Below, in pieces: positions 7,883-41,640 of a stretch of 64,000 nucleotides of DNA. Position 1 is the stretch's first letter. Each line of letters begins with the position of its first letter. The translations under genes were made by a program, and so were the position numbers. The notes under the pieces were generated by a model. It worked only from the letters and a program-made list of their open reading frames with translations, had not been told where the DNA came from and did not search any database. The stretch spans positions 187,922,001 to 187,986,000 of the forward strand of contig OZ038378.1 in assembly GCA_964036045.1 (NCBI GenBank), written 5' to 3'. The DNA is from Eutreptiella sp. 'Long Island Sound 2002'. Taxonomy: Eukaryota > Protista > Euglenida.

Positions 7883-9619
7883 ATGGGGAAGATCGCGGTA
7901 TTGGGAGAGGAGATGGACATGGACTTGGTGCGGGTGCATGACAGGGTGTGCGACCAGGTGCATGAGAAGGAGAGAGCCAGTATGTTAGAAGCAGTGAGCC
8001 AACTAATATTGGGAATTTGCGATGTAGCAGGTGCAGGAGCCGCAGGGGCCATCCCAATGGTTGTGGGCTGCCTATCCGAGTTGGTCGAAAAGGGCGTTGA
8101 CCCGGAGGATGAGGAAAGCTACTACAGTGACGAGGAGGACCATGGGGAGGTGGAACCGGCGGTGGCAGCAAGAGGGCTGGGACAAGTTGGAAACGTCCCA
8201 ATAGCGGAGGCGTTGTGGTCGCGCTGTGTTCCGGAGGATCTGAGGAGTTGGTACCAGAAATGGAGACAGAAGACACGCGGTGTGGGATCATCGGATGGAG
8301 TGGGGGTACGCGAGATGCTGGATGCCTTGGTTGGGGATGGAGCGCTGGGCAAACACACGAACGTATAGGAGGCCAGCAGTAAGGCCCAGATCCGACCTAA
8401 GCGTAGTGAGAAGTGTGCATTCATCTTGAATTGCGTCCAACAAAACGCCTCTGATGGCCGCAAGCCGAGGGGCTTTCAGCTGCCCCAGATTGAGCACCTT
8501 CGTGACTCCATTTTGTTGGGGGGGGAGGCAGAAGCTATATATGGCAAAATTGGACCTTTCCAACTGTTTTTGGAGTCTTTGCTGCCATGGTCGTCGGTTG
8601 GGGAGTTCGGTGTGTGCGTGGGCGATGCCCATTATGTATGGCAATCCCTGCCATTCGGCTGGAAATACTCGCCCCTCCTATGTCTAAAGTTGGTGTACAG
8701 TGTGGTCCGGACATCGGTTTGGTGGTTGCCTGTGTCGTTTTTTGTCTACTTGGACGACATTCTGATTGTAGGAACCAAGCGCTTTGTGCGCAAAGTGGTA
8801 CGCCGTGCCCGGCATAGGTTGCAGCGCGTAGGTTTTGTGATTAGCCCGAAATCTGTCATCGAGCCCTCACGAAACGTGGACTTTGTAGGAAAGGTTTTTG
8901 ACCTTAGGAGTGGCACGTTGGAGAACTGCCCAGGGATGCCGAGAGGCCTGGTGCGGCTGTGGTTGCTGTTGGTGTCGGGTCTGCTGAATAGGAAAGGAAT
9001 GGAGAGGCTGCTGGGACGACTGGAGTGGGCCTTAAGGCTGTCGGCGCGACCGAGTCCCTTTGTGGCAGGTGCATACTTTTGGAAGCATGCCGGGGGCAGT
9101 AGGGTCCCGCGTGCTCTGCTGCGTCCACTGCTAACCGCCATTTGTTTTGCTTTTGTCCCATAGAGGTATACGGTGAAAGCCAAGGTGCAGGCGGAGCCCC
9201 CGACTTGCTGGGGCGCCTATGTTTTATTTGCAGACGCTGCCCCTGTGGGGCCACACAATTTCTTTGTTGGTTTGTGCGTGCCGTCAGGGGGTGTTTCAGT
9301 GCCCCTGCTGGGTGACTACCTTGCCAGCAGCGGAGTTATGGGGCTGGCTGCAGGGAGTTCGTCTGGCGACTTATATGAAGTGGCCCCGGCATGTGTAGGT
9401 AGTGACAGTACAGTGGCGCGATGCCAAGTCCACGGGCAAAGAAGTGCTACTTTTTGTGCTGGCCAGCAGCGGATCCCAGGGGCCCTATTCTGGCTTCGTC
9501 GTTGGTCTGGGATACCCATTGCGGGCTTTTATGTACCTTCTGGTCGTAACCCAGCGGATCCGCCTAGCAGGGTACACGAATTTGACTCGATGATTTCTTG
9601 TTTGGGGTCAGCCCGTTAG
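7883..9619 (+). pseudogene. Reverse transcriptase + hepadnavirus-like RNase H (pol), with stops and frameshifts
   Basis: KLDLSNCFWSL (alternate frame, 8454 ORF), LPFGWKYSP, YLDDILI, VDFVGK; then LFADAA, VGSDST and YVPSGRNPADPPSR. In-frame TAG at 8366-8368 and 9161-9163. Confidence 0.9.
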
Positions 9620-13320: not shown

Positions 13321-16300
13321 CGACCAGCAGGGGACAGAATGCTGCTTACACCATCCGTCGGTGGGTACTACAACAACCGCAACTAGACGGCGCGACTGAA
13401 CCTTGAACGCATCGACCTGCTCACTTGATCTGTGGTAGATTTGTCTCGAAACCGCAGACACCAGAGCAGCAACGCACCGTAACAACTGCCACAGACAGTT
13501 GGACGGCCCTGATCCCAGATCCCCTTAGAGTGGGGCCCTTGTCACAGAATGTCATATCAATTGATTTCAATGCGCCTCCGTAGACTTGGTTCATCAGTGC
13601 TGAACGCTGATTTGCATTGCTCTCACTGCTTGTGTCTTCTTGCGCGCGAAATGCGGCTTTGTCAGAACCGCAAGAGGTGCGGTTTCTGTCATATTTGGGA
13701 ATTTTACCGCGGTTTTGGCAAGGCCGGGGCAGGGTATGATGCATGCGGTTATGGAGCTGCATTGCTTTTCCTCTGCTATCGGGACAGACCCCTTGGCCTG
13801 GAGTTATGGAACCTTACTGATTTTCCCCCGCTATGGGACCCCTGGGTGTAGGGCTTTGGGAGCCATTTTGATTTCTCTCCACTATTGGGACTCCTCGGCT
13901 TGTCGTAATGGCGCAACACTGAGGCTGAAAATGCAGTTGACACGTTGGGTACCTGAAGATTCATTATGGATTTGCCAAAGGAAAATCTGCAGTACTGCAC
14001 CCTAAATTGTATTTCATGTGTGCACAGGTCAATGGAATGACATTGCATTTTTGAGCTTCCATTCCAGTGCAAAACGCAGGATCTGGGTTTGGATGAAACA
14101 AGCTCCAGTGACATTCAGTGCACGGAGAAACGGAGAAATAATGGACCAGGAGTTCAAATACATGATCCACGCCGAATTTTACATACCGGTGGAACAAGAT
14201 CCAAAGCCGGACGACGAATGGAAGGCATCTTGATGGAATCACCTCCACCAATTCCAGAAAGAACCATGGCGCCTCACACCTCGTTTGCTTTCACCCCCTT
14301 CCGCATCTGGTTCAAATTTCGCTACTACCTCCATCAAGTGTTATTGATTTAAGATTTCTACAGGAATTCTGAATGAATGTCATGAAAATCAAAGACACGG
14401 CTGCTGCATGAGGCCGTGAACATTTTGTGGTCGCGCAATTTAGGGCGCCCGCGTGGTCCCTGGATCAGGACATGCGAGTAACTCTGGAGCCTGCGCAATA
14501 CGCTGTATACGGATAACGGCCATGCTGGCGCAAAAGGGAGGGTTACAAAGTCAAGGTTGTTGATTTTTGTGCACACCTAATTTTGATAGGGGCTTTGCAA
14601 GTGAATATCCGCCCGTTGTAGGAGTAAAAGCCCCGCAATATGTCTTTTGTGTTGACAGTTGAGATACTCTAGTGCAAACCAACTGGGACCATTGCCTTGC
14701 CAACGAATCTACACACGACGCAAGAGACCGATGAAGATACGTGTCCACGAGTAGGGGTGGATACAAACAATGAGGGGCTTTGGTTGAGGACAATGCGGAC
14801 AAGGTGCAAACCTCATGCCGACACCGTCGTCCCGGTGGTGTAGCGCACATATGGTGCGCACTATGTCCTTCCACACGTCAAGATTGTATATGGGCACTTG
14901 GGTGTTAGGTCATTGCACACTTGTTTCCGTGTGCTTTGTCGTCCTCAGGGTGTTGACCGGGTTCCGACGAACCTGGGAATGTGCAGCCTTCTAACGTGTG
15001 CCTTGCGCAAACGGAATGAAGGTGCCCCATTTCTTCTTTGGGTCCTTAACTACGGCGGGGATGTTTCTCCTCACATGGATATGCTCCAGCAAGCCACAAC
15101 GGTGCATGATGCATTCCCCATGGAAGCCACTCCGCCAACCTCGAGCTCGTCTTCCGGATACCCGTTCATACCCAAGACTCTCGATGCGGTGAAAAGTGGT
15201 CGCGTTGCAGTGGCGTACACAAGAGGTATGGAGTCGAGTTCAGGCCGATTTTTTCAACCCAACCTTGGGATTCAAAATATGCATCTTTTGACTTGAAGTT
15301 TTGGGAAGAGTGCCGGAAGTCGGAACAAAACATTGAGAGTTAAGGCATTTGTGTTCCTCTTTTGTGTTCCTCTGATCCTTCTCTCCATGATTGCACAGCT
15401 TCAATTTTGCCCAATTTGATTGCCAGATTTCGATTGGGTCAGGTATGACGTGATGAGTTCGGAAAGGCTCTCGTTGGGTCCCAAAGGCACAAGCACGAAC
15501 AGACCAATAACAAGCAACATTTCACACAAAGCCCTCGATATGGGCTGGTTATTGTTGTTTTGCAAGGGTTCGTTGCATAGCCATTTCTTAGCCGACAGCA
15601 CAAGCAAGAACTCGAAATTTACCTATCCGCCCGAGAGGCCCAGAGGCTGAGAGACAGACTAATGCGTTCCATCCCAACACCAATGCCCGCCAGGATAGGG
15701 CCGTGGGGCGCTTAAAGTGTTGCGGGCTCCTGTTTCACACCAAAGTGGCTGTGAGCCCCCATCGTGCAGAGCGCATAGCGGCGGAGGAGGGGGTGGGGGG
15801 TGGTAAATGGCCCGTGCCGTTCAGGGCTGGTGGGAGGGTGGGGCGTCCAAGTGCTGTGCCGTTCATCCCCTTTTGGCAAATTTGAGTACAAAGAACCATC
15901 GGCCGGTGATATATTGTTGTTATTGCACACGTGCGATGACAGCGAGACCTCATGCTCTAATTTTTCAAGAAGAACTCTGTCATCATTGGTTGCTTACATG
16001 CCACAACCACATCACCGGTTGCACTTTGAACCTTTTTTTTTTGGCAAGTTGTTTCATGGTGGACCTTTTCAGGTGTTGGAACAGGGACTGGCTTGTGCTG
16101 TGCTGTGCTGGGGGGGGGGGGGGGCGGCGGGGGGGGGGGGGAAGGGGGTCGAGCCCTTATGCCACGGAATGTGCGCTGCACATCCGAAGCCACTGGACAT
16201 AAGGTATGCTCCCACATTTACCAAAGGTCCTTGTAAAGTGATAAATGTTGCTGATGATTGACAGAGGGCATAGGGCATAGGGCAATAGGGCAATCGTTAG

Positions 16301-19350: not shown

Positions 19351-19761
19351 AGGTTGTGGCCTTGCCAAATCCAAGTTTTGAGCTAGAAACTCACCGGAGG
19401 CGCCCCGGGGCGGGGGCGCCAAGTCAGGAGGTGCCCTCCCAAAGCTGCGCATTTTGTGCCCCAAAACAGCTCCGGTACCCAATCAAAATGGACAAAGCCA
19501 AGGAAACGGTTGCTACACTCCACGTGCGCCTTCATTGCCCGTGACAAAGAGCCTTTTCTTGCCCTCTAACTCCGCGATATGTCTGAGAAACGGTCCAAGA
19601 ATGGCCAAAAATGGCCCCAATTGTGCGTATTTTGTGTCAACAAGCCCCACTTGGTAGAGCTGAAGGGCGGCCCGGGCCGCGGGATGGGGGCCAACGGTGG
19701 GTACACCAGGGTCCCCGGGGCGAAGAAAAATCATTTTTCCAAGGTTGTTGCCAGACAACTT

Positions 19762-20105
19762 GGGATGCTCAAACAAGTGTTTTTAGCCCGTTTTGAGCCC
19801 ATGGCGACGCCTTTTGGCCCATGGAAAATCCCAAAATGCATTGAAAATGGGCCGTTTTGGGACCAAAAATGGGTCAAAAATTGGTCAAAAACGTGTTTTT
19901 CCGAAATTGATCCTGGACCATTCGGGATGCTCAAAGAAGTGTTTTTAGCCCGTTTTGAGCCTGTGGTGATGCGTTTTGGCCCATGGAAAATCCCAAAAGG
20001 CCTTGAAAAGGGGCCATTTTGGGAGCAAAAATGCGTGCAAAATGGGTCAAAAACTCGTTCTACCAAAAGTGACCCTGGACCATTGGGGGTGCACAAACAA
20101 GTGAA
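19762..20105 (+). repeat. 162-bp tandem repeat (about 2.1 units)
   Basis: GGGATGCTCAAA.AAGTGTTTTTAGCCCGTTTTGAGCC recurs at 19762 and 19924; a third partial unit begins near 20086. Confidence 0.85.
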
Positions 20106-23317: not shown

Positions 23318-24414
23318 GTTTGCATGTTCACCTGGAGACTCAGTATGCCGCGGCCCTCCACAAGCACGGCATCTCGTTTGGCACGCTGCTCCTGTATGTC
23401 CCCCTGGCGACTGTGGCAAAGCGTGGCATGGTGGAGTGCGTGGAATATGGAGTCAGTTTCCGTGGAGCTGCTGCGCCTACACAACACAGCCTCGAGTTCG
23501 TCAGTCCCAAGAACTTAGAGGACGCCGTTGCAGCGGTCGACATCGATGCGGAGTGGGAGCCCTTGCAGGCCCGTGCGTCGCTGCTGAACTTCCTGCAGGA
23601 AGCCCTAGGCCTCACAAGGCACCCGCAGGGGGTGTACATCGAGGCGGCCCGCGCCGTGGATGCAGTGTGTGACGTGTCGCAGACGTCGCCCGCGCGCTTC
23701 CGGCGCCAAGTCCTGCGGCACCTCCGCGCCGCAAAGCTGGGGCGCCCTGCGCGCGACGCCGGCCCTCATCCGACCCCTTCCGCTGATCCGTCCCCTGACC
23801 TCGCGCCCATCGCGTACCGCTTCGGCCCTCACCTCTCGCCTTCGGCCGTGGCCGCCCTGTGCGGCGGCCTGTCCGTCCCGGGCCACGCCGTCGGGCTGCA
23901 CCCGGCGCGCGTGCGACAGGCCGAGACGTCCGGCCACGGGGACGCCGTGCTCTGCCAGAACGTGCTGCTGCTGCCGCAGGCGGTGCGCCGGCTCGGCGTC
24001 TCCGGCCTCTTCCGGGACTCGAAGGAGCTGGTCGACCGCCCGCTCCTGAACCCACCGAGCGTCGTCCTGGTCCGGCTGCACGCGCTGGGGCCCCGCCCCG
24101 CACGCCGCGCGCTCGCGCAGTTCGTTGCTGCGGAGTTCGGGGCGCCCGGGTCCGACCTCGTGCGGCACTCCCCGGCGGACTTTGCAGCGGAGCCTCCGTT
24201 TTTGGCCGCCCTGCGGCCCGACCCCGGGCTCCGGGCCTTCGCCGCGGGGGTGCACGGGCTCTGGGGGACGACGGCGTACCGCGTGGCCTCTGACGTCCGT
24301 GCCAACCCCTGTCAACACACGCTCCTGTCCGTACCCGCGCCCTTCTTTGTGCCGGGGGGCCGGTTCCGGGAGATGTACTACTGGGACAGCTGCTTCATCA
24401 TCCAGGGCCTGCTG
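23318..24414 (+). CDS. TREH: Trehalase (GH37), first visible exon, including a long N-terminal extension
   Basis: LFRDSKELVDRPL and VPAPFFVPGGRFREMYYWDSCFIIQGLL; donor GT at 24415. The 5' boundary is uncertain (AG at 23316-17, or first in-frame ATG at about 23428). Confidence 0.85.
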
Positions 24415-25972
24415 GTGTGTGGCGCGCGTCATACACCCTCCGTCATGCAGTGGGTTGTGGAGAACGCCACGCACCGGGGGGTATTGCGGTGACCAAATGT
24501 ACGTGATTTCCCATCCCTGTGTGCCCCCTCCCTTACTGCATGCACGTCTTCCGGGGGGGGGGGGGGGGCGTTGCTACGGGGAAACACGCCACAAGGGGGT
24601 TTGCAAGCCCCCCCCCCCCTTTGTCGTTGGCTTTTGTTTTTATGCTAAACTAGGGTTTCCACGTTATTGTGGGTATCAAAGAACCCGCCCGCTTTTTGGC
24701 GGCGGATATCACCGGTCCGGTAGACACCACCTTGGAATGCACCATCACAGAGCTGATGCAGACAAACAAAGGTCTGAAAAGTGTTTTTGCGTTGTAAAGA
24801 TCGTCAGTAACCTACAATAGGCGTAGGCATCGTATTGATTTCGTATTGATTCCGTACTTTTGCGTCGCTTCGACAGGGGGGGACATGGGCTGTTGGCACC
24901 AGCCAAAAGTGGTCATAGCCAATGATGATTTTGCCATTGCATGCCGAACGCGTGAAACAAGTTCGTCCCTGACTGCAGCTGAACACACGCACGATGCTGC
25001 CCGCCTTTTGCTTCCCTGCGAATCCCGCGTGTGGGAGGTATGCACATGAATGAATCCCACCAAAACAGAAAGACAATGCATCCAAAGGAATGTGGATGCA
25101 AACCGACCAAAACACTGCCCGGGGTGGGGCTCAGGGCACTCACCTTGTGACTTGGTGTCTAGGGTCTGTCTTTGCTGGGCACCATCCTGCCCGTTTCCTC
25201 CTCGCATCTTTCTCCACTCCTCAACCGCGCTGACGCTTCTGCCTGCCTCTGCCTTGCCTTTGTTCTTTCTCTCGCCCCCCCCCCCCCCCGCCGCCACCTG
25301 ACGCCCCATCCTGTTCTCCCCATTTGGAACGAAAGAAGATTGTTCCAATTGGGGACAAAGATGAGCGAGGCCCAGGGAACAGGCACGGTCACACCAAGGA
25401 ATGGGAGGATGACAGCAGCAGGCCCAATGCCAACAGAGCACAGGAGATCGGGTTTTCAACTGGGTGCGGGGGGGAGGGGGGGGTCAATAGAGCTCCCCAA
25501 AAGTAGGAGAGGGGGTGCGGGAAAGGGGCTCAATTGATAAGACCATTAGTCAGCTATTATGAACTATGAACTCTGGCACCAAAGCCACCGAAAAATTTCC
25601 TGAGCACTGAAAATGGTCACGTATTTTCCCACCAGAAATATGGCAAATGATGACTTTTCTGAACCCCCTCGACGCGCTGATCCCAAAAATCCCATTGTTG
25701 TTTTTGCCGAATTTTGGGTCCGGGTCACCTCCGGGGCCCGGGGGGTCAGTCTCGGTAAGATTTGGGGGGGGGGGGGGTCTAGCCAGACGGCTGTATCGAC
25801 CCATGCCCAGTTGAAAGCCCGCCCACCCTTGCAGAGGGAAGGACCCAGGGCATACATCGAATCTTGGCTGAAAGTTCGCACTGACTTTCCCTTTTGCCCT
25901 TGTGGACCCTTCCCCCCCGTCCCATACACACACGCTCTGTATTGTACCCCTGCCTTGCATGTGTGTGTGCAG

Positions 25973-26134
25973 GTGTCTGGCATGATGACCAGTGCAAAGG
26001 GGATGCTGCGAGACATGTTCGCCCTTGTAGCCATCTACGGTTTCGTCCCCAACGGCAACCGTGTTTACTATCTGAACCGAAGCCAACCTCCGCTGCTGGC
26101 AGACGCCGTGTGGCGATACTTTACTGAGACACAG
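25973..26134 (+). CDS. TREH: Trehalase exon 2
   Basis: AG at 25971-72, GT at 26135; VSGMMTSAKGMLRDMFALVAIYGFVPNGNRVYYLNRSQPPLL...RYFTETQ; phase-0 joins on both sides. Confidence 0.95.
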
Positions 26135-26678
26135 GTGTGCACGCAAACCACCCCACTATCCCCATATCCAGAACCCCAACCCCAACCCTCAGCCCTGCGG
26201 CACATTCGCCCTGACAAATTGTACCATGAAACGTGCACGCGCATACACACACTCCACTGGTAACACCACCACCACTTGTGCAACATTTTATGGTTGCGGA
26301 GGCAGACCGAAGAAAGGGAATGTCGCCCCCAGCACACAGCAACTAGGAACACCACGGCATCTGCATGGAGCAGGTGTTTTGCATTCCTTGGCATGCCACT
26401 GCATTGGCGGACATATGTGGCACATTTCCTTGGCATGCCACTGCTTGGCGGACATATGTGGGGGCTGGAATGTTTTGGTTGGGTTGGGGGTGTGCCTGGC
26501 ACCAGTATTAACGCCATGTGGAGCACTCCCGGTCACCTCGAGTGACAAGCGGACCTCCTGCATTGTACTTGGTGCTGCGGGCAAGGGATAGCCACAAGAA
26601 GGGGGTCCAATTTTGGGTGGCGGTCTGGCTTTGTGCCACTCCGTGACACATGGAGAGTGACATTTGGCTTTTTTAAGC

Positions 26679-27539: not shown

Positions 27540-28246
27540 GGGGGCGCCTTAAGCGCAGTGCGCGCGCAGTGCAACTATTTGGGTGTTTGGCCACAGTAGA
27601 AACCCATACTTTGTGGTACTTTGGGCATCATTGTTCTTTGATAGTAGGTTTTGATGCATTTGGGATCTGGCATTTTTGGATGTTCACCCTGTTTCACCCA
27701 TTTCTACTTTTTTGCATAAAAATTTTTCCCATTTCCACCACATCTACTCTTTTTCTCGGTTGATTGATATGGTGATACATTTTCAGGGTGCCTGCTACGG
27801 GACATCATACTTCCCTCCTCATTTCTCAGGCCCACTTTCTCTATGGATCTCAGTATTGGGGATGGGGTGTTCTACACCCGCTCCAATGGCCTGCAACCTC
27901 CTACCACGGTGGTTGGAACGGCTGAAGACGGACTCCTCCACTTGGAATACTACCAAGATGGGTTGAGAGTGGTGAACCGGCGATGCAAGATGGAGTCCAT
28001 CTCCTTTGCCATCCCAAGTTCAAACTCGCCACCTGACTACCCTCCATCTCCGCCGCCCAACACACAGCCAAGTTCCCCCCCAAAGGCCCTTGGTCCTTCA
28101 CCACTGCCACAAGAACCGGGAAGGTCCCCGTCTAGTTTGGGTCGCCTAATTCTAAGGGTGTTTCCAAGGGGCGTGCCTAGGGGCTCTTCGGGTGGAACAT
28201 AGTCTAAAAGTAGCGCGCAGTGCGCGCGTAGTGCAAGGATTCCCCC
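27540..28246. mobile_element. Non-autonomous DNA transposon, subfamily 2, copy E4
   Basis: Ends GGGGGCGCCTT...AAGGATTCCCCC; perfect TSD ACG (27537-39/28247-49); ends match E2 but the middle differs. Confidence 0.85.
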
Positions 28247-29435
28247 ACGGTCTACAGGTACCAAGTTCCTTCCTCTACATTTTGGCGCATTTCAAGGGGT
28301 TAGTAAAATAGTTTAGCCCATGTGGAGAAAGTGGGGGTTCCCCTTTGCTTTCCCGTCATCAAACGTCCATGCTTTGAGCACCAGATTCACAATACGAGGC
28401 ACTATACAAATGTCATTGGTTGCTCAGTGAAGCTCCTGCATTCAGAGCTCTTCCCCGGCTCAAGGGCGGTCCTTGTGCTGTTCACTCAGTGGGTTTTGTA
28501 CAGGTAGATACTCTAAATGGTCATGGAGTGGTGTTTTTTCCTTCTTGTTGCAAGTTTCGCCGATTCTATGGTTTAAGAGGATTATTCTTGCCCTGCGGTG
28601 CCCGCGGCGTGCCTGCAGCGCCCAGGTGTAGCCCTCAAGGGATAGGGTTCCATTTCTCTTAGGCGGCCCTTTACGCGCGTAGACTTCGTTGCTAAAAGGC
28701 ACGATTCATGGCGATTTCAACATCCGTTTTTTGCACCCAAAAAAAGCATATCATTTTTTCGGCCAAACCCACGTGTATTTTCATCGTGGGATACAACAAC
28801 CTCGCCTTTTGTTGCTTCCAGAGGTGTACGTATACACCCCCTATTTCGGGTTGAAAATTGTATCATTTAAAATTTTTGGGCACTGCAGTGCCCAAAAATT
28901 TGAAATGGCTTCTTTCAGTGGGTTCTTCAGTACACCTCTGTAGTCATCTCCACAGGTGATGTCATACTGCAGCAGCAGGCATCAAAACTTGGCATACCCG
29001 TTATCCATGGGTCATCGCACCGCGGTGTTATACTCGGAAGGCCACGTACAATGTACCTTGCCCAATGACTTCCATTCCTGTCCAAATGTGCACTTGAAAA
29101 TGGACTTCCAGTACTTTTGGGCACTGCAGTGTCCAAAAAATTTAAAACGCCGTATTTCACTCCTATTGGTTCCCATTGCGTAACACCTGACAAAGGACGT
29201 ATGAATCATCGGACGTTGGTACTCATCCTCTGCTCATTGGAAATATACTGCCGGTTGTCTGACTGCCACCTTGGAGTGTACCCAGGCTTTGGAACGTTCC
29301 ACGTCCATTGGGGGATACATTGTTTGGATCTTCGCTAGCTGCTTTTGGTCTATGCCGCATCAGGTTTGTTTTGTGATAGTGTCTCTGTTTTCTTTGTCCC
29401 CTTACCTTTGCTGCCTGCGAACAGGACTTTTGTCC

Positions 29436-31526
29436 ATGGATGCGGCTCCCTTCCGGCAGTTCCTTAGTTCGAAGGTATATGCTTCAAAGGAGGATCTATC
29501 TGAGGCTGTGGGTGTGGATAAGGGTGCCGATGCGTTTTGTACGTGGGTGTTAGATCTCCGGTTGGAGTGGAGAAGTAGGCGGTCCGTTGGTGAATACATC
29601 CAACAAAGGGACAGGCGGACCGTTAATTGTCTGCCGGACCAATGGTTCCGTGTTGCTGAGCAAGAGATTTTTAATATATGGTCTGTTCTACACAAGAGGT
29701 GTCGTCCACGTGCCAAGAGGGCTGTAGGTGTTCAACCCAAGAGTCGTGTGCAACGTAGGTGTTTGGCTCACATGGGTCAATGTTCTTACCATGTACCCTC
29801 CTTTGCTGTTCAAGGAGCAACTGCGTGCACCAGTCTTTGGCAGACCTTGGAAGGTAAACCTGCTATTCTATGGTTTGATAATTTTCATAGACGTAACTTC
29901 CGGCCTGTGCCTGGTAATGAGAACCGGTCCCTTAATTGTACAGCCGGTGCTATCATACTCTTGAAACGACCTGTTGACGTTATGCCGTCTTTTCCTAGCC
30001 TCTCGGTCTTGCGGCAGAGGATTGGGTACACTGCAGACTTGTTGGTGCAGAGCCATAAAAACTTCATTGATGGCTTGCAAGGGTTGATGGACGACCCCAT
30101 CCGCCTTCAACATGTCCGTTGTCCCTTGGACATACGACGGGCTAATGTTACCAGCCCAGCTTGGACCCCCTTTTTTCTCACAGACCTAACTGTGTCCGCT
30201 ACCCCCGACCTTGTCTCTATTATTCACGGGCTCCAGGAGGTGCAGCAGCACACACAGCACCGTCTTCCATTGTTGGTCGACGAAAATATTCACTACCGTG
30301 TCCTTAAGCTCGTTTACAGCATCAGCTATGCTCGGTACAACATGCCCCTGTTCATTACACGTACCCCGGTAGTGTATGGCACATGGCACCCATATAAATA
30401 TTGTGTAACCCTGTGCTACAGAAGATTCTTCCCTTTATTTACCTATTTTCCCTATGGTTCACTCAATTTGGGCACTGCAGTGCCCAACTTTCCGAAACTC
30501 ATCTATATGGAGCGTATGATTCTGGTGCTCTTGCACTTGGCCCATAAGTGGCGCCAACCTTTGGAACAGAAGTTACAGACTCTAAGGGGTTTGCACCGAC
30601 CGGGTAACGCTAATCACAGCACACTTCTTACACAGGTGCAAGGGTTGGTAACGCTGCTGCATGGTTACATTCCAGCCTTGTTTATTATTGGGTCGCAAGT
30701 GAGGGATTGTCATTGGTCTGCACAGGGAGAGCAGCACGCTGCAGGGCCATTGCTGAGCCGTTGCCTACACGTCCTTCTGAGGCTCACACTAGGTTATGAG
30801 GACAAGGTTGAATATGTGCGCACCATTGTTGTTGCTAGGCTGTTGTGGTCCCAGTGGTTTGCCCGCTTACCTGGGGTGGCACACAGTGAGGAACCGTGTG
30901 AGGCCCTGTTAAGCCGTGTTGTGCACTTAATGGCACAACACCCTGGGAACTGTACGTTGCAACAGGTGCATGACCTGTTTATACTCACTCCCGTTGCAGA
31001 CCAGACCCCAAAGGACCGGCAGTACGTTAATGTTCCCAAGGGACTGCCACAACTGGTTGATCGTCGTTTCACCAGATTGATGGCGCGATTTGATGTTGGT
31101 GTTATACCCCCCCTGGTCTGGTCCGGTCAGAAGTCGAGTATCGTGCAAGACAGGTGGGATCCTGCCAAGATGGATTTTCCTTGCACACTAGATACGGTGC
31201 TCACTGCAGAGCATTACCGAGATCTATGTGCCAAGACATTGCAGACACTTGTTAAACCTGTTAAAGTTGATGCTGACGTGATGACAGAGCTGGGTAGACA
31301 CGTGCCACAACGTCCTCCAGGTGATATGGACACAACAGTAGCACAGGCACAGGACATGTTACGCGCATGTAATACACCAGACCGGTACAAGCAACGCCGG
31401 CCAGCACGCGCTTTTGCGCGAAGGGACCCCGCCCGGATACCCGCCCCCCCCAATGCTGATGGCGGCAGTGACAGTGATGAGGACCCCCCCCCCCCGCCGG
31501 TGGGGCAGCCGGAGATCCAGACCTGA
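29436..31526 (+). CDS. Putative DDE transposase (Academ/DUF6589-like motif pattern), about 696 aa from this ATG; start uncertain
   Basis: Open frame from 29271; ILWFDNF (D), PLLVDENIHYR (D), YGTWHPYK (GxxH) and SEEPCEALLSR (E); located inside TIRs. Family assignment is by eye. Confidence 0.7.
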   Translation: MDAAPFRQFLSSKVYASKEDLSEAVGVDKGADAFCTWVLDLRLEWRSRRSVGEYIQQRDRRTVNCLPDQWFRVAEQEIFNIWSVLHKRCRPRAKRAVGVQPKSRVQRRCLAHMGQCSYHVPSFAVQGATACTSLWQTLEGKPAILWFDNFHRRNFRPVPGNENRSLNCTAGAIILLKRPVDVMPSFPSLSVLRQRIGYTADLLVQSHKNFIDGLQGLMDDPIRLQHVRCPLDIRRANVTSPAWTPFFLTDLTVSATPDLVSIIHGLQEVQQHTQHRLPLLVDENIHYRVLKLVYSISYARYNMPLFITRTPVVYGTWHPYKYCVTLCYRRFFPLFTYFPYGSLNLGTAVPNFPKLIYMERMILVLLHLAHKWRQPLEQKLQTLRGLHRPGNANHSTLLTQVQGLVTLLHGYIPALFIIGSQVRDCHWSAQGEQHAAGPLLSRCLHVLLRLTLGYEDKVEYVRTIVVARLLWSQWFARLPGVAHSEEPCEALLSRVVHLMAQHPGNCTLQQVHDLFILTPVADQTPKDRQYVNVPKGLPQLVDRRFTRLMARFDVGVIPPLVWSGQKSSIVQDRWDPAKMDFPCTLDTVLTAEHYRDLCAKTLQTLVKPVKVDADVMTELGRHVPQRPPGDMDTTVAQAQDMLRACNTPDRYKQRRPARAFARRDPARIPAPPNADGGSDSDEDPPPPPVGQPEIQT

Positions 31527-31822
31527 GGGCTGCTGATTTTGTGGGTGATGATGGATGGGACCCGGACCCCCCCCCTCCAGAAGCAGTGTCTGTTCACAGT
31601 GATGATTCCGATGCCCCCTTGGCTGTCCTTTCGGAGCTGAATGAGTTTGACCCTCGATTTTTACCAGGTGCATCCGACTGTGATGCTATTTCTGCCATCT
31701 GTGTTCAATCGTCGAGCGCTGCCAGTAGTCATCAACATTAGAAGCCTGTAAATCAACAATTTGCAGCCCTGTGGCCTTTTGTAGTGTGCCGTGTGACCCT
31801 TTGTTAGCCCCTTTGCTAAGCT

Positions 31823-32147
31823 ATGCCTTCGGATACCGAACTGCCGGAAGGGGATGAGCAGCAGACCGCATCGCAAGCCGTTCACACAGCAGAGAAGACA
31901 CGGGCGCAGTCGGGGCAGGCTCCAGTGAAGCGGACGGGGACAGACCGGGCAACGGAAACATTCCGGACAACGTGGATCAAAAAGGAACTGGTCAAGATAC
32001 AACTGACCAAGATAAAGTTTGACACCGACCTCACGCGTGGGCAGACCAGAGAGAGGGACGAGGACTCAGTACTATCGCGGATCGCAAGCCTGAGGACAAA
32101 TCCACCCTGCCGGCCTATCTCAAACATTCTCATATGGCGAATCGAAG
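31823..32147 (+). CDS. Transposon gene 2, exon 1 (start of ParB/Srx-like domain)
   Basis: ATG at 31823 after a pyrimidine tract and AG (31819-20); donor GT at 32148. The five exons total 2,232 nt = 743 aa + stop with no internal stop. Confidence 0.75.
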
Positions 32148-32271
32148 GTACACTACCATCATGTCACACACGCGTCGTAATTTTCACACATTCTGGTCGT
32201 TTGGGCACTGCAGTGCCCATCTCGCTGATATCTCCCATCTCCCATCTCCCTGTGGAGCATTTTTCTATCAG

Positions 32272-32588
32272 CTGAAATTCCCTACTGCTTGGGCGGGGCT
32301 CATATCCTGACGGCACTCCAAAGACTTCACCGAGAATACTGTGCGAACTCACGGGCACTGCCGGACTGGTTACAACACGTCTACTGCGAGGAGATCAGAC
32401 ACGACTGTCCTGTTGACATCAGAGAGATTATTGGAGGCGATCACAATGCGGTACAACACTCAGTGAGCAAGCTGAGTATGGGACAAGTGGCCGCTCGAAT
32501 TTGGACTGAAGTGCAGAAGGGCAAAGCGAAAGAGATGCTGCTGGTGGCTCTGCGGAAGTGTGGCCGGCTGGGTGAGAAAACATCTGTG
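32272..32588 (+). CDS. Transposon gene 2, exon 2
   Basis: Acceptor TTTTCTATCAG at 32271; join WRIE-A-EIPYCLGGAHILTALQRL; donor GTATGA at 32589. Confidence 0.75.
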
Positions 32589-32712
32589 GTATGAGAGATG
32601 CACGATGAGACCACCGTTGTCAGTCCTTTGCGTACCTGTGGCCTGTCCAACACTGTATCCCTGCCAGGATGCAATCTGGAAGAATTGGAGACCGCTAGTT
32701 TCATTACTGCAG

Positions 32713-32770
32713 ATATCTGGTGGCCGCGTGGCTGAGTTTATTGACACCTTTGAGAAGACTGCCGGTGAAG
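32713..32770 (+). CDS. Transposon gene 2, exon 3
   Basis: TTACTGCAG acceptor; ISGGRVAEFIDTFEKTAGE; donor GTATTA at 32771. Confidence 0.65.
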
Positions 32771-32866
32771 GTATTATGTCCTCTGAGTACCTGTTTTTGT
32801 CGTCTTTTGGTGTTCATGGGAACTGCAGTGCCCAAATTCGATGCGACCCTAATTTTTGCACTGCAG

Positions 32867-33525
32867 TGCTCAACCCCTACACTCTGCGGCCGTTGACGGG
32901 ACTGCATGGCGACCAGATGGATGAAATACTGCTGTACATGGCTGGAGATGGGGCCAAGATCGCAGGACTACATGCCAAGGCCAGACTGTTGAAGCGGGAC
33001 CGCCTGTGGGAGATGCTGTACCTTCACCCGGACAACACGCTCATCCATCCTTCTCGACGTATGTTTATGGGGCGGCAGGGTTTGGCGCGATCGCTGTTGA
33101 CCCCCCCCCCCCCCCGGACCCACGACGTAAGGCTGTTTCGATCCCAGTGGTACCAGTGGTCTCCTGTTCTAACAGTGAACGTGCATGAAATGCAAAGAGT
33201 CCGCAAACTGCTTGCAAAGTCGCCGAGGGCCGCCAAATTGTCACTGGGGAAATGGACCTGGAGTGCCGAAAATCCCTTACCAAGCTGGGACACCATCCAG
33301 AAAGCACCGCTGTGGCAGGATGAGGAATGGGCTGACCTGAGGATTGCGCTGGCGAGGCCTGTCAAGGAAACTGCAGTGACGGCGACTGATGGGGAGAAAT
33401 CAACAACTATTTGGCTCAACAAGCCGCAGGATGGGACTGAAGCAACCGGAGCTCGGGCAGAGGCAATTGCGTTGGTTCCTGGCAAGGCTATCCCGTATAC
33501 GATTGCATTGAGGGAGTACAAAGCG
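32867..33525 (+). CDS. Transposon gene 2, exon 4
   Basis: TTTTTGCACTGCAG acceptor; VLNPYTLRP...LREYKA; donor GTATGC at 33526. Confidence 0.7.
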
Positions 33526-33625
33526 GTATGCAACCATTAGGCATAAAAATGGGATCGATTTCGCATTGCTGGTCACTTTAGGCACTGCAGTGCCCATCTG
33601 TAATGAAATGTGCTTTTGACAACAG

Positions 33626-34498
33626 GTCTTCATTGAGTGTACGAAGGAACAAATGGACGATATCCATCCGCTGGTGCTGAAGGTTGCTGGGAAGTTGGTA
33701 CCTGTGGCTATTGGTGGAATGGCGGCCGACGTTAAGTTCCTGGTTAATCGGTTGCGCGACTCTGAGGAGTGTGGAGGCTGGCAGTATATTATGACCTCTT
33801 TTTTTGATCAGGCAGTCGGTCACCCGACCTATCGGTTCGAGGAGAGGACTATTTGCTTCTGTGTCCCAGACAAGTTTAGGGTGAAGGTCCCGAATATTTT
33901 CATTTGCGATCAGGGTGCATACGGCAGCACCATTGGTCTGGCAGCGGCTGGTTGGCTCCTGCGTGTGCTTGGTATTGTTCCCCGACGCGACAGACAGTCC
34001 GAGGATGAAGTGTGGCTCCTGCTTTTGACAGCATCGGCTGTATTGCCAGCACAGCTCCTGTCCTGCCTTCCTGAGTCCCCCTGTCTGGCAGCTTGTTTCA
34101 CCGGGCGCCAGGGTTTGTTTAACGAGTTCTGTGAACAGCTAGCGGCGTATGTGCAGGAGATGGACTGTGTCTACTTGGTTAACTGGGACGCTTGGATGCC
34201 AAGGATTAGGGACTGTATGCCAGTTGTGGTGCAGCGGCCTGGGGAAGGGGAAGATGAGGAGGGGGGGGACGATGTGGAGGAAGAGGAGGATGACGAGATC
34301 GTGCTGGTCGGAGGTGGTGACAGCAAGAAGAGGAGCACCCCCAGCAAGAAGAAGCCGTCCTCCGACGACAGTGGGGATGAGGTTGATGATCCCCCCAAAA
34401 GGCCAGCCAAAAAGGCCAAGGACAGTACCCCCCTCAATATGTTTCACGCCAAAGTAGGTCAGGCCAAGGGTAAGAAGGCTCCACCAAAGAAGAAGTAG
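33626..34498 (+). CDS. Transposon gene 2, exon 5 (unknown domain, acidic tract, Lys-rich NLS-like tail)
   Basis: TTTTGACAACAG acceptor; VFIECTKEQMDDIHPL in frame with the 33653 ORF; ends KKAPPKKK*. Confidence 0.75.
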   Translation, partial: VFIECTKEQMDDIHPLVLKVAGKLVPVAIGGMAADVKFLVNRLRDSEECGGWQYIMTSFFDQAVGHPTYRFEERTICFCVPDKFRVKVPNIFICDQGAYGSTIGLAAAGWLLRVLGIVPRRDRQSEDEVWLLLLTASAVLPAQLLSCLPESPCLAACFTGRQGLFNEFCEQLAAYVQEMDCVYLVNWDAWMPRIRDCMPVVVQRPGEGEDEEGGDDVEEEEDDEIVLVGGGDSKKRSTPSKKKPSSDDSGDEVDDPPKRPAKKAKDSTPLNMFHAKVGQAKGKKAPPKKK

Positions 34499-35358
34499 AC
34501 TGCGTTGTGCGGTTGGCACTGCCTGTGTCCATGTCAGTAGTTTTTTCGCCTCGATTTGCACACTGTCGCGCGTCCTGTTCTATGCAGGTGTGAGACTGGT
34601 GCCCTTTTTCATGTTTTGGTAATTTTGGGCGCTGCAGTGCCCAAGTTCAGCGACTCGCCATTTTTTTACCCCTGCTGCGCCACTTCTTTTGCAGGCATTG
34701 TTGCCGTCATTTATTATTGCATTGGCTGCACTGGCGGCGCCTCCGTTGTTCGTCGGCACCACTGGTGGTGCATTATTTGTCACGCTTCGCATACAATCAC
34801 AGTGACTGGGTCAGCAGACGCGGTAACAAAAAGCAAACCAGAGTTTTGCATGTGTTTGCCTGTCGTCCTCCTTGCTTCATTTTTTAGGTTGCATTTTACG
34901 GTGTGGTTTGAAATGCAGCAGCGGATGATTTGGAAGAATTGGATTTTTCTTTGGATGGACACTGCAGTGCCCAAATTTGAAGGGGATACATGACTTTTGA
35001 CTGGCACATGTTGTACCCCCTACGCACAGTCATTTTGGATAATTCACAGGTTTTTGGGGGTGTTCCCTGCAAAGCACAATTGTGCAATTTTTCAAAGTGG
35101 TTTTTCAGCCCCCGTTTTGGGGTGGTACCCATTTGGGAACTGTGGCAATTTTGCTACGTGCGTATAGGGCCGCCTAAGTTTCTGGGTGATCTCCCCCATC
35201 GCTCAACGATCCGACTCACCATCAGGGGGGGAGGGGCAGAGGGGGCGGGGGATGGGGGGGGGGGGGCTGTGGCTCTCACATTTGTTGATCTGAGATGCAA
35301 ATGGTCAAGATGCTACCGCCTCCGTGACTTGCGTGCACAAGCCTCGCTCCCCCCTCAG

Positions 35359-36555
35359 GACTGGGATTTCGCAGACGAGGCGGTGCCCCATTTGGAAACC
35401 GAGCACTCTTTCTGGCAGCGCCCACCCCATCTCGTGACGTTGCCCGACGGCAGCGCACTGAATCGCTACGCGGTGCACTCCCACGGGCCGCGCCCCGAGG
35501 GCTGGGACGAGGACCAGGCGCTGCTGCCAGTGAACGCGGACGTGCCAGAGGACGCGGTGTACTCCACGGTGGCAACCGTTGCGGAGTCCGGGTGGGATAT
35601 GAGCCGGCGGTGGTGTGTGGCGGAGGCTGCTTTGAGCCCCGACGCCTTCTCTAGTGCTGAGCAGTCTTCCACTCTGTGCCCGGGCTGCACCCTCAAACCC
35701 AGCCCCAGCCCCAGCCCCAGCCCCAGCCCCACCTCCACGTCCGGGCCCAGCGCGCCCTGCGTGCACAACCCGGAGGTCTGTGACACCGGCTGCGAGCAGC
35801 CCCTGCGGGTCATCCCCGCAGACCTAAACGCCTTCCTCTACCGCAGCGAGTGCGTCATCGCCGACCTGCACCGCCGCCGCGCGGCCCGCGGGGCCGCCGG
35901 GGCCGCGGAACGGGCGGAGGTCTACGAGGCCCACGCCCGTGCGCGAGCGCGGGCCATGCGCCGGTGGCTTTGGCGTGGCCAGGGCCGTACGTGGTCGGAC
36001 CTGCACCTTGGCCCACAGGGGCCCGCGGACCGGAGCTCTACTGCGGACCCACCCCTCGCACCCCCCGATCCCCATCCCCCCACCGTCCCCGGTCCCACTG
36101 CAAGCCCCCACAGATACCTCTCCGACATCGTCCCGGTGTGGGCGGGCGTGCCGTGCCCTGAGCCCGCGGCCGCCGTACTCGCTGCGATCGAGGCCTCGGG
36201 CGGTGTGCGCTATCCCGGGGGGCCGCCCGTGGGCCTGCCGCCGGGCACAGGGCAGCAGTGGGACTACCCCAACGTCTGGGCGCCGTATGTGTTGTTCCTG
36301 GTCGAGGCTCTGGAGGCCTTGGGGGACCCGCGTGGCCCACAGTTGGCGGAGGCCGTCGCTCGGAGGTTCGTCGGGAGCGTGTGGGACGGCTGGCGGCAGT
36401 CGCCGTCCGGGCAGTTGTATGAGAAATACGACTGTCGGTACTCGGGGGGTGTGGGGGGGCACGGGGGGGAGTACCAAGTGCAGGTGGGTTTTGGGTGGAC
36501 GAACGCCGTTGTGCTGAAGCTTTTGGTCAAGTATTATGGGGCGCAGCGGTCGTAG
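35359..36555 (+). CDS. TREH: Trehalase exon 3 (catalytic half)
   Basis: CCCCTCAG acceptor after a 9,224-nt intron; ETQ|DWDFADEAVPHLETEHSFW, AESGWDMSRRW (catalytic Asp), PADLNAFLY, QQWDYPNVWAP, GGEY (catalytic Glu), GFGWTN; stop TAG. Confidence 0.95.
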   Translation, partial: DWDFADEAVPHLETEHSFWQRPPHLVTLPDGSALNRYAVHSHGPRPEGWDEDQALLPVNADVPEDAVYSTVATVAESGWDMSRRWCVAEAALSPDAFSSAEQSSTLCPGCTLKPSPSPSPSPSPTSTSGPSAPCVHNPEVCDTGCEQPLRVIPADLNAFLYRSECVIADLHRRRAARGAAGAAERAEVYEAHARARARAMRRWLWRGQGRTWSDLHLGPQGPADRSSTADPPLAPPDPHPPTVPGPTASPHRYLSDIVPVWAGVPCPEPAAAVLAAIEASGGVRYPGGPPVGLPPGTGQQWDYPNVWAPYVLFLVEALEALGDPRGPQLAEAVARRFVGSVWDGWRQSPSGQLYEKYDCRYSGGVGGHGGEYQVQVGFGWTNAVVLKLLVKYYGAQRS

Positions 36556-40616: not shown

Positions 40617-41640
40617 GGGGGAGCGTTAGCACGCTGGGCATTTTTTTTTGACCCGTGCCCCACCGGTGGCCTTTTAGGGCGTGCACTAAGGGGGCGCACT
40701 TAGCGCAGTGCAGCTATTTGGGCGCCTGGTTGTACTAGAGACCCATACTTTGAGATACTAGGGCATCATTGTGACCTCTAGCGTAGGTTTTGACTTCTGA
40801 TTTTGTCCCCTTTGTTGGGGACACCCGAGAATGCAGGGGTGACGTAGCATTTCCGCCCTCTTTTGGGCCCCAACCTTCGGGTGCTATTGAGGAAACCGGG
40901 ACAATCTCTGAATCCACGCTTTGTTGCGTGGCCCCTTGAGTTGGGGCTAGGGACTCTCAATCCACGCTTGGTTGCGTGGCCCCTTGAGTTGGGGTTAGGG
41001 ACTCTCAATCCACGCTTGGTTGCGTGGCCCCTTGAGTTGGAGTTCGGGACTCGCAATCCACGCTTTGTTGCGTGGCCTGTTACAATGGCGTGCACGGGTG
41101 GTATAGGGCATGCATTGTGCAGCTATTTGCTCGGTTGTGGCATTGGGGTTTGGTCAGGAACATCTGGCGTGGCGGCCCCAATGAGTTGCACCAGTTAGTC
41201 CGTATTTCGTTGCAGTTTACACAATTTTGCATCCGGAGGCAAGTCCGTCACCCCCCTTATAGACCATGGAAGCATGTCCCGCCTCATGTTTGGACCGACC
41301 AAAGCAACTCGGCCGCCACGCAAGATGAGGCAGAGGATGAGGCAGAATTTTATTGCCAGAAGCGCTCCACTGTCGCAGTTTGTGATGAAAGTAAGGAGCA
41401 CTATTGTACTAAATGTATTGACACCCACACTTGTGGGACCAATGTTGTTTGTTAAGTACAATACAAATGACATTTGGAGTTGTTGAATTCACAGCTATTG
41501 CTTTATTATGCAACGTGCTTTGTAGGGAAGGTGTGCAGTGCAACGTGGTCTACTTGGGGGGCTTCTCCATGAGAGGGTAAATCTGGGACTCAAGTCGGGA
41601 TAGTTAATAGAAAAGTAGCGCGCCGGGCAAACATTCCCCC
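40617..41640. mobile_element. Non-autonomous DNA transposon, subfamily 1, copy E5, with a nested subfamily-2 left end (from 40690) and a 48-bp tandem array
   Basis: Ends GGGGGAGCGTTAG...AACATTCCCCC; perfect TSD AAT (40614-16/41641-43); internal segments shared with E1. Confidence 0.85.
40911..41077 (+). repeat. 48-bp tandem repeat, about 3.5 units
   Basis: AATCCACGCT... starts at 40911, 40959, 41007 and 41055. Confidence 0.95.

Follow-up and report, generated by a model that had tools for sequence, protein, structure and literature searches.

We analysed a 64,000-nucleotide window of the genome of Eutreptiella sp. 'Long Island Sound 2002' (GenBank assembly GCA_964036045.1, contig OZ038378.1, positions 187,922,001 to 187,986,000 of the forward strand; positions below are counted from the first letter of this window). 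Positions 28658-35178 are occupied by a 6,521-bp DNA transposon. It carries two genes on the + strand, a putative transposase (gene 1, 29436-31526) and a gene with a predicted ParB-like N-terminal part (gene 2, five predicted exons between 31823 and 34498), together with nine sites of the 18-bp palindrome TGGGCACTGCAGTGCCCA. The element is bounded by 25-nt terminal inverted repeats (TIRs) at 28658-28682 (+ strand, beginning CTTAGGCGGCC) and 35154-35178 (- strand), which are 92% complementary to each other. The 5-bp target site duplication (TSD) TTTCT stands at 28653-28657 and again at 35179-35183.

Copies of the element, sister families and loci of homologues were retrieved from public assemblies as L001-L011, the sister families all from assembly ERZ25074135. 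The copy at L001:6223-12743 was 97.5% identical to the window element over exactly the same span. Homology between the two loci starts at 28658, and the copy is flanked on both sides by the TSD CATGT. The same limits with different TSDs in two copies demonstrate that the element and its ends are real, and the intact TIR element proposed for this interval by the initial annotation is thereby borne out. Directly after 35178, five to six distinct flanks branched off in three DNA-like public runs, and read depth at the termini was 3-5 times the internal depth in such runs. These data show that the window family is multi-copy and includes non-autonomous derivatives. The interval 28658-35178 is thus a young two-gene cut-and-paste DNA transposon that was recently mobile, and the window copy is probably still competent for transposition.

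Gene 1 encodes a 696-amino-acid putative DDE transposase of an unclassified family. P0001 was 97% identical to it, the cluster has 288 members, and relatives at 34-38% identity occurred in other samples. D282 (within LLVDENIHY) and E485/E486 (within AHSEE) were invariant in the alignment of the family (A5), a WFDNF motif is present as well, and these features are compatible with a DDE transposase. Neither gene 1 nor its homologues matched Pfam, including DUF6589 (PF20231, Academ-like transposases), which gave no match even at E 10 for six homologues. A PDB sequence-profile search with the transposase returned noise only, and no DNA-binding domain was identified in gene 1. Protein-language features placed gene 1 near DUF6589 (0.94, 196/256 shared), which we treat as a lead only. 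The 5-bp TSD of the window element differs from the 3-4 bp of AcademX elements.

The palindrome array

Eight matches to TGGGCACTGCAGTGCCCA with at most two mismatches were found, all of them within the element, where 0.00 were expected from 100 shuffles; a ninth site, with three mismatches, also lies within it. The initial annotation had described nine perfect palindromes found in the element only. The number and the confinement stood, but only three of the nine are perfect (28877-28894, 30469-30486 and 32202-32219). Five have one mismatch (29118-29135, 32817-32834, 33579-33596, 34626-34643 and 34956-34973), and the site at 32855-32872 has three. With the exception of this last one, every site keeps one perfect half-site, and the first palindrome is perfect over 32 bp (28870-28901).

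The sites are spread over the whole element. Two stand in each subterminal region, approximately 210 and 460-535 bp from the ends (28877 and 29118 on the 5' side, 34626 and 34956 on the 3' side), while the TIRs themselves contain no palindrome. The third site lies inside the coding sequence of gene 1, and four are located in introns of gene 2: one at the centre of intron 1 (32202), two in intron 3 (32817 and 32855), and one in intron 4 (33579). The site at 32855 overlaps the predicted acceptor of intron 3, and its central CTGCAG provides the AG.

The imperfect variants, including the one at 29118, were identical in L001 and in L002, and were therefore already present in the master copy. Comparison of the window element with L001 revealed one change in 162 palindrome bases, against a divergence of 3.4-4.0% in non-coding and 1.5-2.1% in coding DNA. 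The site within gene 1 encodes the peptide GTAVP. This peptide is kept in P0004, a 38% identical homologue from another sample (L004:1676-1714), but the DNA of P0004 is non-palindromic there and differs at three synonymous positions, suggesting that the palindrome was fitted into the coding sequence by codon choice. Sites thus occur in all kinds of DNA along the element, where an older intron gained one and a coding sequence was recoded to hold another, and this suggests selection for many dispersed sites.

Two other origins were considered and rejected. The palindromes are not small transposons of their own (miniature inverted-repeat elements), since the copies resemble each other over approximately 22-32 bp only and lack target duplications. 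Creation of introns by palindrome insertion was rejected for intron 1, because the sister family L003 has an intron at the same position and phase that contains no palindrome.

Gene 2 and its ParB-like domain

Gene 2 is open with GT-AG introns. The initial annotation gave it four introns and a spliced product of 743 amino acids. That model is one of 252 open combinations, so the exact length of the protein is not fixed. Intron 1 (32148-32271), which splits the ParB/Srx-like domain, is supported in two ways. One spliced contig from an estuary metatranscriptome (run X1) joins 32147 to 32272 (with a loose end at 32149), and the distant family L003 has an intron at the same residue and phase, 69 nt long, in frame and palindrome-free. 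The splice between exons 1 and 2 was seen in this one metatranscriptome contig only, another RNA contig runs unspliced through intron 2, and runs X4, X6 and X8 behave like DNA; the RNA evidence is thin.

The first half of the predicted ParB/Srx-like domain is encoded in exon 1 (31823-32147) from approximately position 31991 onwards. The second half, with the motif GGAH, lies in exon 2 (32272-32588), which also holds the start of a helical domain. Exon 3 (32668-32770) appears helical and similar to the helix-turn-helix of ParB; its boundaries are approximate and were derived from open-frame models and alignment with contiguous homologues such as P0205. Pfam gave no match to the pieces of gene 1 and gene 2 or to their homologues, and PHROGs returned nothing useful. 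A profile built from two families (window and L003) retrieved 250 homologues at E ≤0.001, many of them uninterrupted, with the conserved motifs D..GQxR, PP, GxQH..A, and R..AG..Q. Sulfiredoxin gave the best sequence matches of this profile in the PDB (six entries, E 0.13-0.47), with GGCH and GGQH in exact register.

The closest uninterrupted homologue, the contiguous metagenomic protein P0176, was folded in place of the intron-split window domain. Its residues 7-55 align with exon 1 (31% identity) and residues 66-133 with exon 2 (41%, E 7e-16). The L003 open reading frame (ORF) was not usable as an intron-free relative, as it reads through the 69-nt in-frame intron. The P0176 model was of high quality (pLDDT 93.1, pTM 0.86, from a 54-sequence alignment), and its top 50 Foldseek matches in the PDB were without exception ParB, Noc, KorB, pNOB8 ParB, PadC, sulfiredoxin, SbnI or serine kinase (SerK). 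VIA-align superposed it on Myxococcus xanthus ParB with CDP/CTPgS (Z 10.7, root-mean-square deviation 2.4 A, 95 residues), and 170-190 of its residues aligned with Caulobacter ParB-parS, pNOB8 ParB, and KorB. In the ESM Atlas, residues 1-227 matched clusters of ParB_N with HTH_ParB or KorB (TM 0.59-0.69). With P0176 as proxy for the window protein, membership in the ParB/Srx fold and a helix-turn-helix domain directly behind the N-domain are both found at the level of the fold. The modelling thus supports a ParB/Srx fold with a ParB-type helical domain behind it in the N-terminal part of gene 2. The ParB/Srx-like N-terminus had been recognised by the initial annotation, and the sulfiredoxin match falls at the very motif that it pointed to.

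The same annotation had noted that the arginine patch (GxxR) is replaced by GGAH. This was right, and the patch GxxRxxA proved to be absent from the whole family. Its consensus is L-x-G-Q-H-x-x-x-A, and NGQH (62), GGQH (24), SGQH (20) and AGQH (19) were counted 125 times together; GGAH is peculiar to the window lineage, almost all of its relatives having GxQH. By sequence position only, AG seems to stand in place of the EN of the CTPase motif, the glutamate and asparagine of CTP hydrolysis, which are probably missing. Pfam revealed no ParA-type ATPase partner, and the element has only two genes. As both the arginine patch and a ParA partner are absent, gene 2 falls outside the family of CTP clamps.

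Exon 4 (32867-33525) encodes a middle region with no recognised fold, which is 29-47% conserved in L008 and L009 and gave no Pfam or PHROG match. Exon 5 (33626-34498) encodes a candidate N6/N4 DNA-methyltransferase-like domain to approximately position 34240. Behind it come a run of acidic residues and a lysine-rich tail resembling a nuclear localisation signal. The exon 5 model was of low confidence (pLDDT 52, pTM 0.51, from a shallow alignment of 14 rows). Nearly all of the top 50 PDB matches to this low-confidence model were beta-class N6A/N4C DNA methyltransferases or MT-A70 enzymes, with MboIIA (Z 10.2), M.RsrI (9.5), and CcrM (9.2) among them. In the ESM Atlas, nine of the ten clusters nearest to the model were PF01555 N6_N4_Mtase (TM approximately 0.53), and three of these also contained ParB_N. 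Searches of exon 5 by Pfam, PHROG, and PDB sequence profile yielded no match (the PDB search gave noise), and the motifs DPPY (motif IV) and FxGxG (motif I) were not found in the window family or in two other families. At the position of motif IV, as judged by the start of the structural alignments, the window protein has ECTK and L003 has TPPG. With moderate confidence, we take exon 5 to encode a descendant of a methyltransferase that has probably lost catalysis. This candidate domain had escaped the initial annotation, as had the imperfection of all but three sites and the prior reports of ParB-like cargo with inverted repeats from algae.

The AFDB fold clusters nearest to the ParB-like model were uncharacterised eukaryotic proteins, including a 'Tudor domain-containing protein', a 'DGQHR domain-containing protein' (rank 3), and a 706-amino-acid 'DNA methylase N-4/N-6 domain-containing protein'. 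Judging from such model matches, the ParB-like fold may be widespread as eukaryotic cargo.

Sister families, derivatives and genomic surroundings

TGGGCACTGCAGTGCCCA was found in none of the 11 retrieved loci except copies of the window family, and at least four sister families in the same genome carry several copies of a different 18-22-bp palindrome of their own, while a fifth keeps one copy. L003, with a transposase 34% identical to gene 1 and a TIR that likewise begins CTTAG, contains ten copies of AGTGCGCGAGGCCTCGCGCACT in subterminal DNA, intergenic DNA, and introns; its subterminal sites stand at distances from the ends similar to those in the window element. Seven copies of TTGCGCGAGGCCTCGCGCAA surround the ParB-like gene of L010, and seven copies of GAACGCTCTGCAGAGCGTTC were found in L008. 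L009 holds two relatives, namely a central decayed element with a single AACGCGCTGCAGCGCATT in intron 1, and a further element (16-18 kb) with five copies of CTGGCCGAAATTTCGGCCAG. Among the retrieved loci, no family's motif occurred in the locus of another, except for the core common to the L003 and L010 motifs. From family to family, a change in one half-site is always matched in the other, which is what a reader acting as a dimer would impose. The loci of P0004, P0005, P0176, and P0205 are contigs of 0.8-3.2 kb, too short to reveal repeats or partners.

The kinship of the palindromes was compared with that of the two proteins. The ParB-like domains of the families with CTGCAG-centred palindromes (window, L008, and the centre of L009) were 49-53% identical to each other. 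Those of the GCGCGAGGCCTCGCGC families L003 and L010 were 37% identical to each other and approximately 21% identical to the window domain. Transposase identities, in contrast, were nearly even among the window, L003, and L008 (32-34%). In these sequence comparisons, palindrome kinship follows the ParB-like protein and not the transposase, which hints at a module of accessory gene plus sites that can pass from one transposase lineage to another. At L010:8765-11921, the ParB-like gene P0119 stands amid the seven TTGCGCGAGGCCTCGCGCAA sites with no gene 1-type transposase within 9 kb on either side, and the neighbouring long ORFs, one of 1458 amino acids, gave no Pfam match. A non-autonomous element, another type of carrier or a domesticated copy may account for L010.

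Several loci proved to be rearranged or partial. L002 holds a window-family derivative with an internal deletion that joins gene 1 directly to exons 4 and 5 of gene 2 and leaves six palindromes (L002:6700-11000); upstream of it, L002:1783-5111 is a piece of another family with three copies of GCGAAATTTCGC. L011 is an old scrambled copy, 70-75% identical, whose palindromes have decayed, so that it is of no use for co-variation. Two right termini are present in L003:6665-13881 (at 9441-9470 and at 13852-13881, as part of a 110-nt repeat that is 98% identical), and the locus looks like a deletion derivative beside a 5'-truncated copy; ORFs of a long-terminal-repeat retrotransposon and an endonuclease flank it. 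The further element of L009 (L009:16059-18185) is a related element that runs off the locus and includes minus-strand coding sequence similar to exons 4 and 5. Immediately before position 34585, contigs of four runs share a foreign sequence. This common junction indicates a common variant or derivative with only the last 594 bp of the element, including two palindromes, which was absent from every retrieved locus. Poly-C tracts in the coding regions (31483, 31566, and 33100) differ in length among copies and runs, and this variation would shift the frame in some copies.

Pfam matched Trehalase on either side of the element and on its strand, with profile positions 2-197 upstream (23320-26263) and 303-511 downstream (34990-36555). 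The insertion is thus intronic, within a trehalase gene of the host. Window repeats at 19648-19998, 27555-27620, 28134-28246, and 40703-40843 match the flanks of L001 at 82-92% and are unrelated dispersed repeats of the genome. An Rfam scan of the window gave no match.

The predicted reader of the palindromes

We hypothesize that the element carries a private pair of a ParB-like protein and a palindrome, with a dimer of the gene 2 protein as the predicted reader of the sites, and on balance we consider this the probable explanation. The protein, of approximately 750 amino acids, would consist of a ParB/Srx N-domain, a ParB-type helical domain, the middle region, the methyltransferase-like domain devoid of DPPY, and the acidic and lysine-rich tail. 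The nine palindromes would be the most likely cognate sites of its dimer, through which the protein would find and load on DNA of its own family. Because the arginine patch is missing, and probably also the glutamate and asparagine of CTP hydrolysis, we would expect site-specific binding and bridging of many sites (occupancy in the manner of KorB and Noc) instead of a CTP-gated sliding clamp. Selection for many dispersed sites, as suggested above, would also fit occupancy or bridging better than end recognition alone. The outcome may be pairing or compaction of the ends for transposition, or control or marking of the chromatin of the element. Which protein reads the sites, and what binding would do, we infer from the comparisons above. 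Two observations, the kinship of the palindromes and the arrangement of L010, lean towards the ParB-like protein as reader, and the private palindrome of each related family adds indirect support.

The palindromes could instead be sites of the gene 1 transposase for assembly of a transposition complex, comparable to the subterminal repeats of hAT, CACTA, and Mutator elements, and the ParB-like protein would then do another job, such as marking of chromatin or DNA. This arrangement would account for the two sites at approximately 210 and 460-535 bp from each end, which recur at similar distances in L003, and the 3-5-fold read depth over the site-holding termini fits non-autonomous derivatives that keep them; transposase and sites are, moreover, always co-inherited. 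However, the TIRs are palindrome-free and sites also occur in introns and intergenic DNA far from the ends, gene 1 has no identified DNA-binding domain, the relationships among palindromes follow the ParB-like protein while the transposases are equidistant, and L010 keeps seven sites by its ParB-like gene with no such transposase nearby. We consider a transposase reader unlikely on these grounds, though it is the strongest of the competing explanations.

Explanations with no element-encoded reader fare worse. That the palindromes are DNA or RNA structures or sites of host factors (cruciforms, pre-mRNA hairpins, silencing triggers or decoys) appears improbable. Their complete or almost complete symmetry, over as much as 32 bp, would suit such roles, and many sites lie in transcribed introns and untranslated regions, one of them providing a predicted splice acceptor. 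Loop-less 9-bp hairpins are weak RNA structures, however, codon choice preserves the site within the gene 1 reading frame, and a different sequence of similar length in each family fits a co-evolving specific reader better. Least probable of all is the origin of the repeats as functionless by-products, such as tiny palindromic insertions or gene conversion spreading within the element. The sites do stand mostly in freely variable DNA, and old dead copies such as L011 lose them, but no shared flank or target duplication surrounds them, they are conserved relative to neighbouring non-coding DNA, their count is far above chance, and at least four further families repeat this layout, each around a palindrome of its own.

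Several points weigh against the gene 2 protein as reader of the sites or against parts of the proposed mechanism. Since the transposase is inherited together with the sites, it could equally be the protein that reads them. The relationship between palindromes and ParB-like domains rests on five families, of which two (L008 and the centre of L009) are decayed or rearranged. The fold was demonstrated on a model of a homologue with 31-41% identity, the window domain itself being split by an intron, and with GGAH the window family departs from the GxQH of almost all its relatives. The canonical nucleotide-binding residues of ParB are absent, so that the ParB mechanism cannot simply be transferred. 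The methyltransferase-like label of exon 5 depends on a model of pLDDT 52, and sequence searches gave it no support.

ParB-like and ParB-methylase transposon cargo is already known from algae. In the red alga Bostrychia, the Plavaka protein PAG3 combines a ParB-like domain at its N-terminus with a 2OG oxygenase domain; tandem inverted-repeat arrays stand beside PAG3, and its authors proposed that PAG3 binds its own transposon (bioRxiv 10.1101/2025.02.11.637652, later Curr Biol 2025). Sola1-1_Ec32 of Ectocarpus encodes a protein of 1104 amino acids with a ParB-like domain and an N4C/N6A methyltransferase (PMC12477816), and green algal cases are credited to Iyer, Abhiman and Aravind (2011), as cited in that paper. 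Like these, the window element is a cut-and-paste transposon, with TIRs and a TSD, that bears an N-terminal ParB-like cargo gene. Inverted repeats accompany the gene in Bostrychia, as they do in the window (nine) and in four sister families (5-10 each), and a fusion with an N4C/N6A methyltransferase, as seen in Ectocarpus, may also exist in gene 2, judging from its low-confidence model. The transposases are Plavaka/EnSpm or Sola in Bostrychia and Ectocarpus, whereas that of the window is of an unclassified family, and its TSD is 5 bp long. The repeats form tandem arrays beside the gene in Bostrychia, whereas single 18-22-bp palindromes are dispersed over the window element, including introns and coding sequence. 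The partner domain is a 2OG oxygenase in Bostrychia and appears methyltransferase-like, with no DPPY, in the window. The host is a different eukaryote, and its genome contains several such families side by side whose palindromes differ. The arginine-free GxQH domain and the apparently disabled methyltransferase domain further set the window family apart from the algal cases.

Among bacterial systems, KorB with its OB sites (plasmid RK2) and Noc with its NBS sites combine ParB_N with a helical DNA-binding domain, as does the P0176 model, which aligned with KorB (8qa9) at Z 8.7 over 175 residues and with ParB_N+KorB clusters at TM 0.60-0.63. In both systems one short palindrome is scattered in many copies over the encoding replicon, as in the window element; RK2 carries 12 OB sites. 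KorB and Noc are CTP-dependent clamps with GxxRxxA, whereas the window family lacks the patch. Compared with the RK2 system, the window element also lacks a ParA/IncC partner, KorA, and plasmid replication, its host is a eukaryote, and gene 2 has spliceosomal introns. As an analogy, KorB with the dispersed operators of RK2 would be a closer working comparison than chromosomal ParB-parS. Partition systems of the latter type share the N-domain fold (the M. xanthus ParB superposition above) and the length of a parS-like palindrome with the window element, but arginine patch, ParA, and evidence of segregation are absent from the window, and its sites are family-specific and inside a transposon.

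Phage and plasmid fusions of ParB_N with N6_N4_Mtase (PF02195 + PF01555) have the domain order suggested for gene 2, and three of the Atlas clusters nearest to the exon 5 model are so built. Gene 2 differs from them in its unrecognisable motifs IV and I, its low-confidence model, and the long middle region between the domains. GxQH also resembles the DGQHR of DndB-type ParB-like domains, a name borne by one of the AFDB cluster matches. The arginine of DGQHR is absent from the window family, however, and structures of the DndB system and SspE aligned at Z 3.7-4.5, well below the partition ParBs.

A wider scheme can be proposed only tentatively, and we regard it as clearly less probable than the pairing of gene 2 with its own palindrome. 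Co-resident families may have evolved mutually orthogonal pairs of ParB-type protein and palindrome, similar to plasmid incompatibility groups. Each protein would load only on copies of its own family, at approximately ten sites, and would bridge or mark that DNA by means of a ParB fold that needs no nucleotide and a methyltransferase domain that is disabled, and the module would be exchangeable, with its sites, between transposase lineages.

If the ParB-like protein reads the palindromes, these families would form a compact natural set of orthogonal pairs of protein and DNA site in a eukaryotic nucleus. They would offer a direct way to test the idea, put forward for algal transposons, that such cargo proteins attach to the very element that encodes them, and the arginine-free GxQH fold would reveal which functions of a ParB domain are possible in the absence of CTP. 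A fold of bacterial partition and repressor proteins would then have been re-used by eukaryotic transposons for self-recognition.

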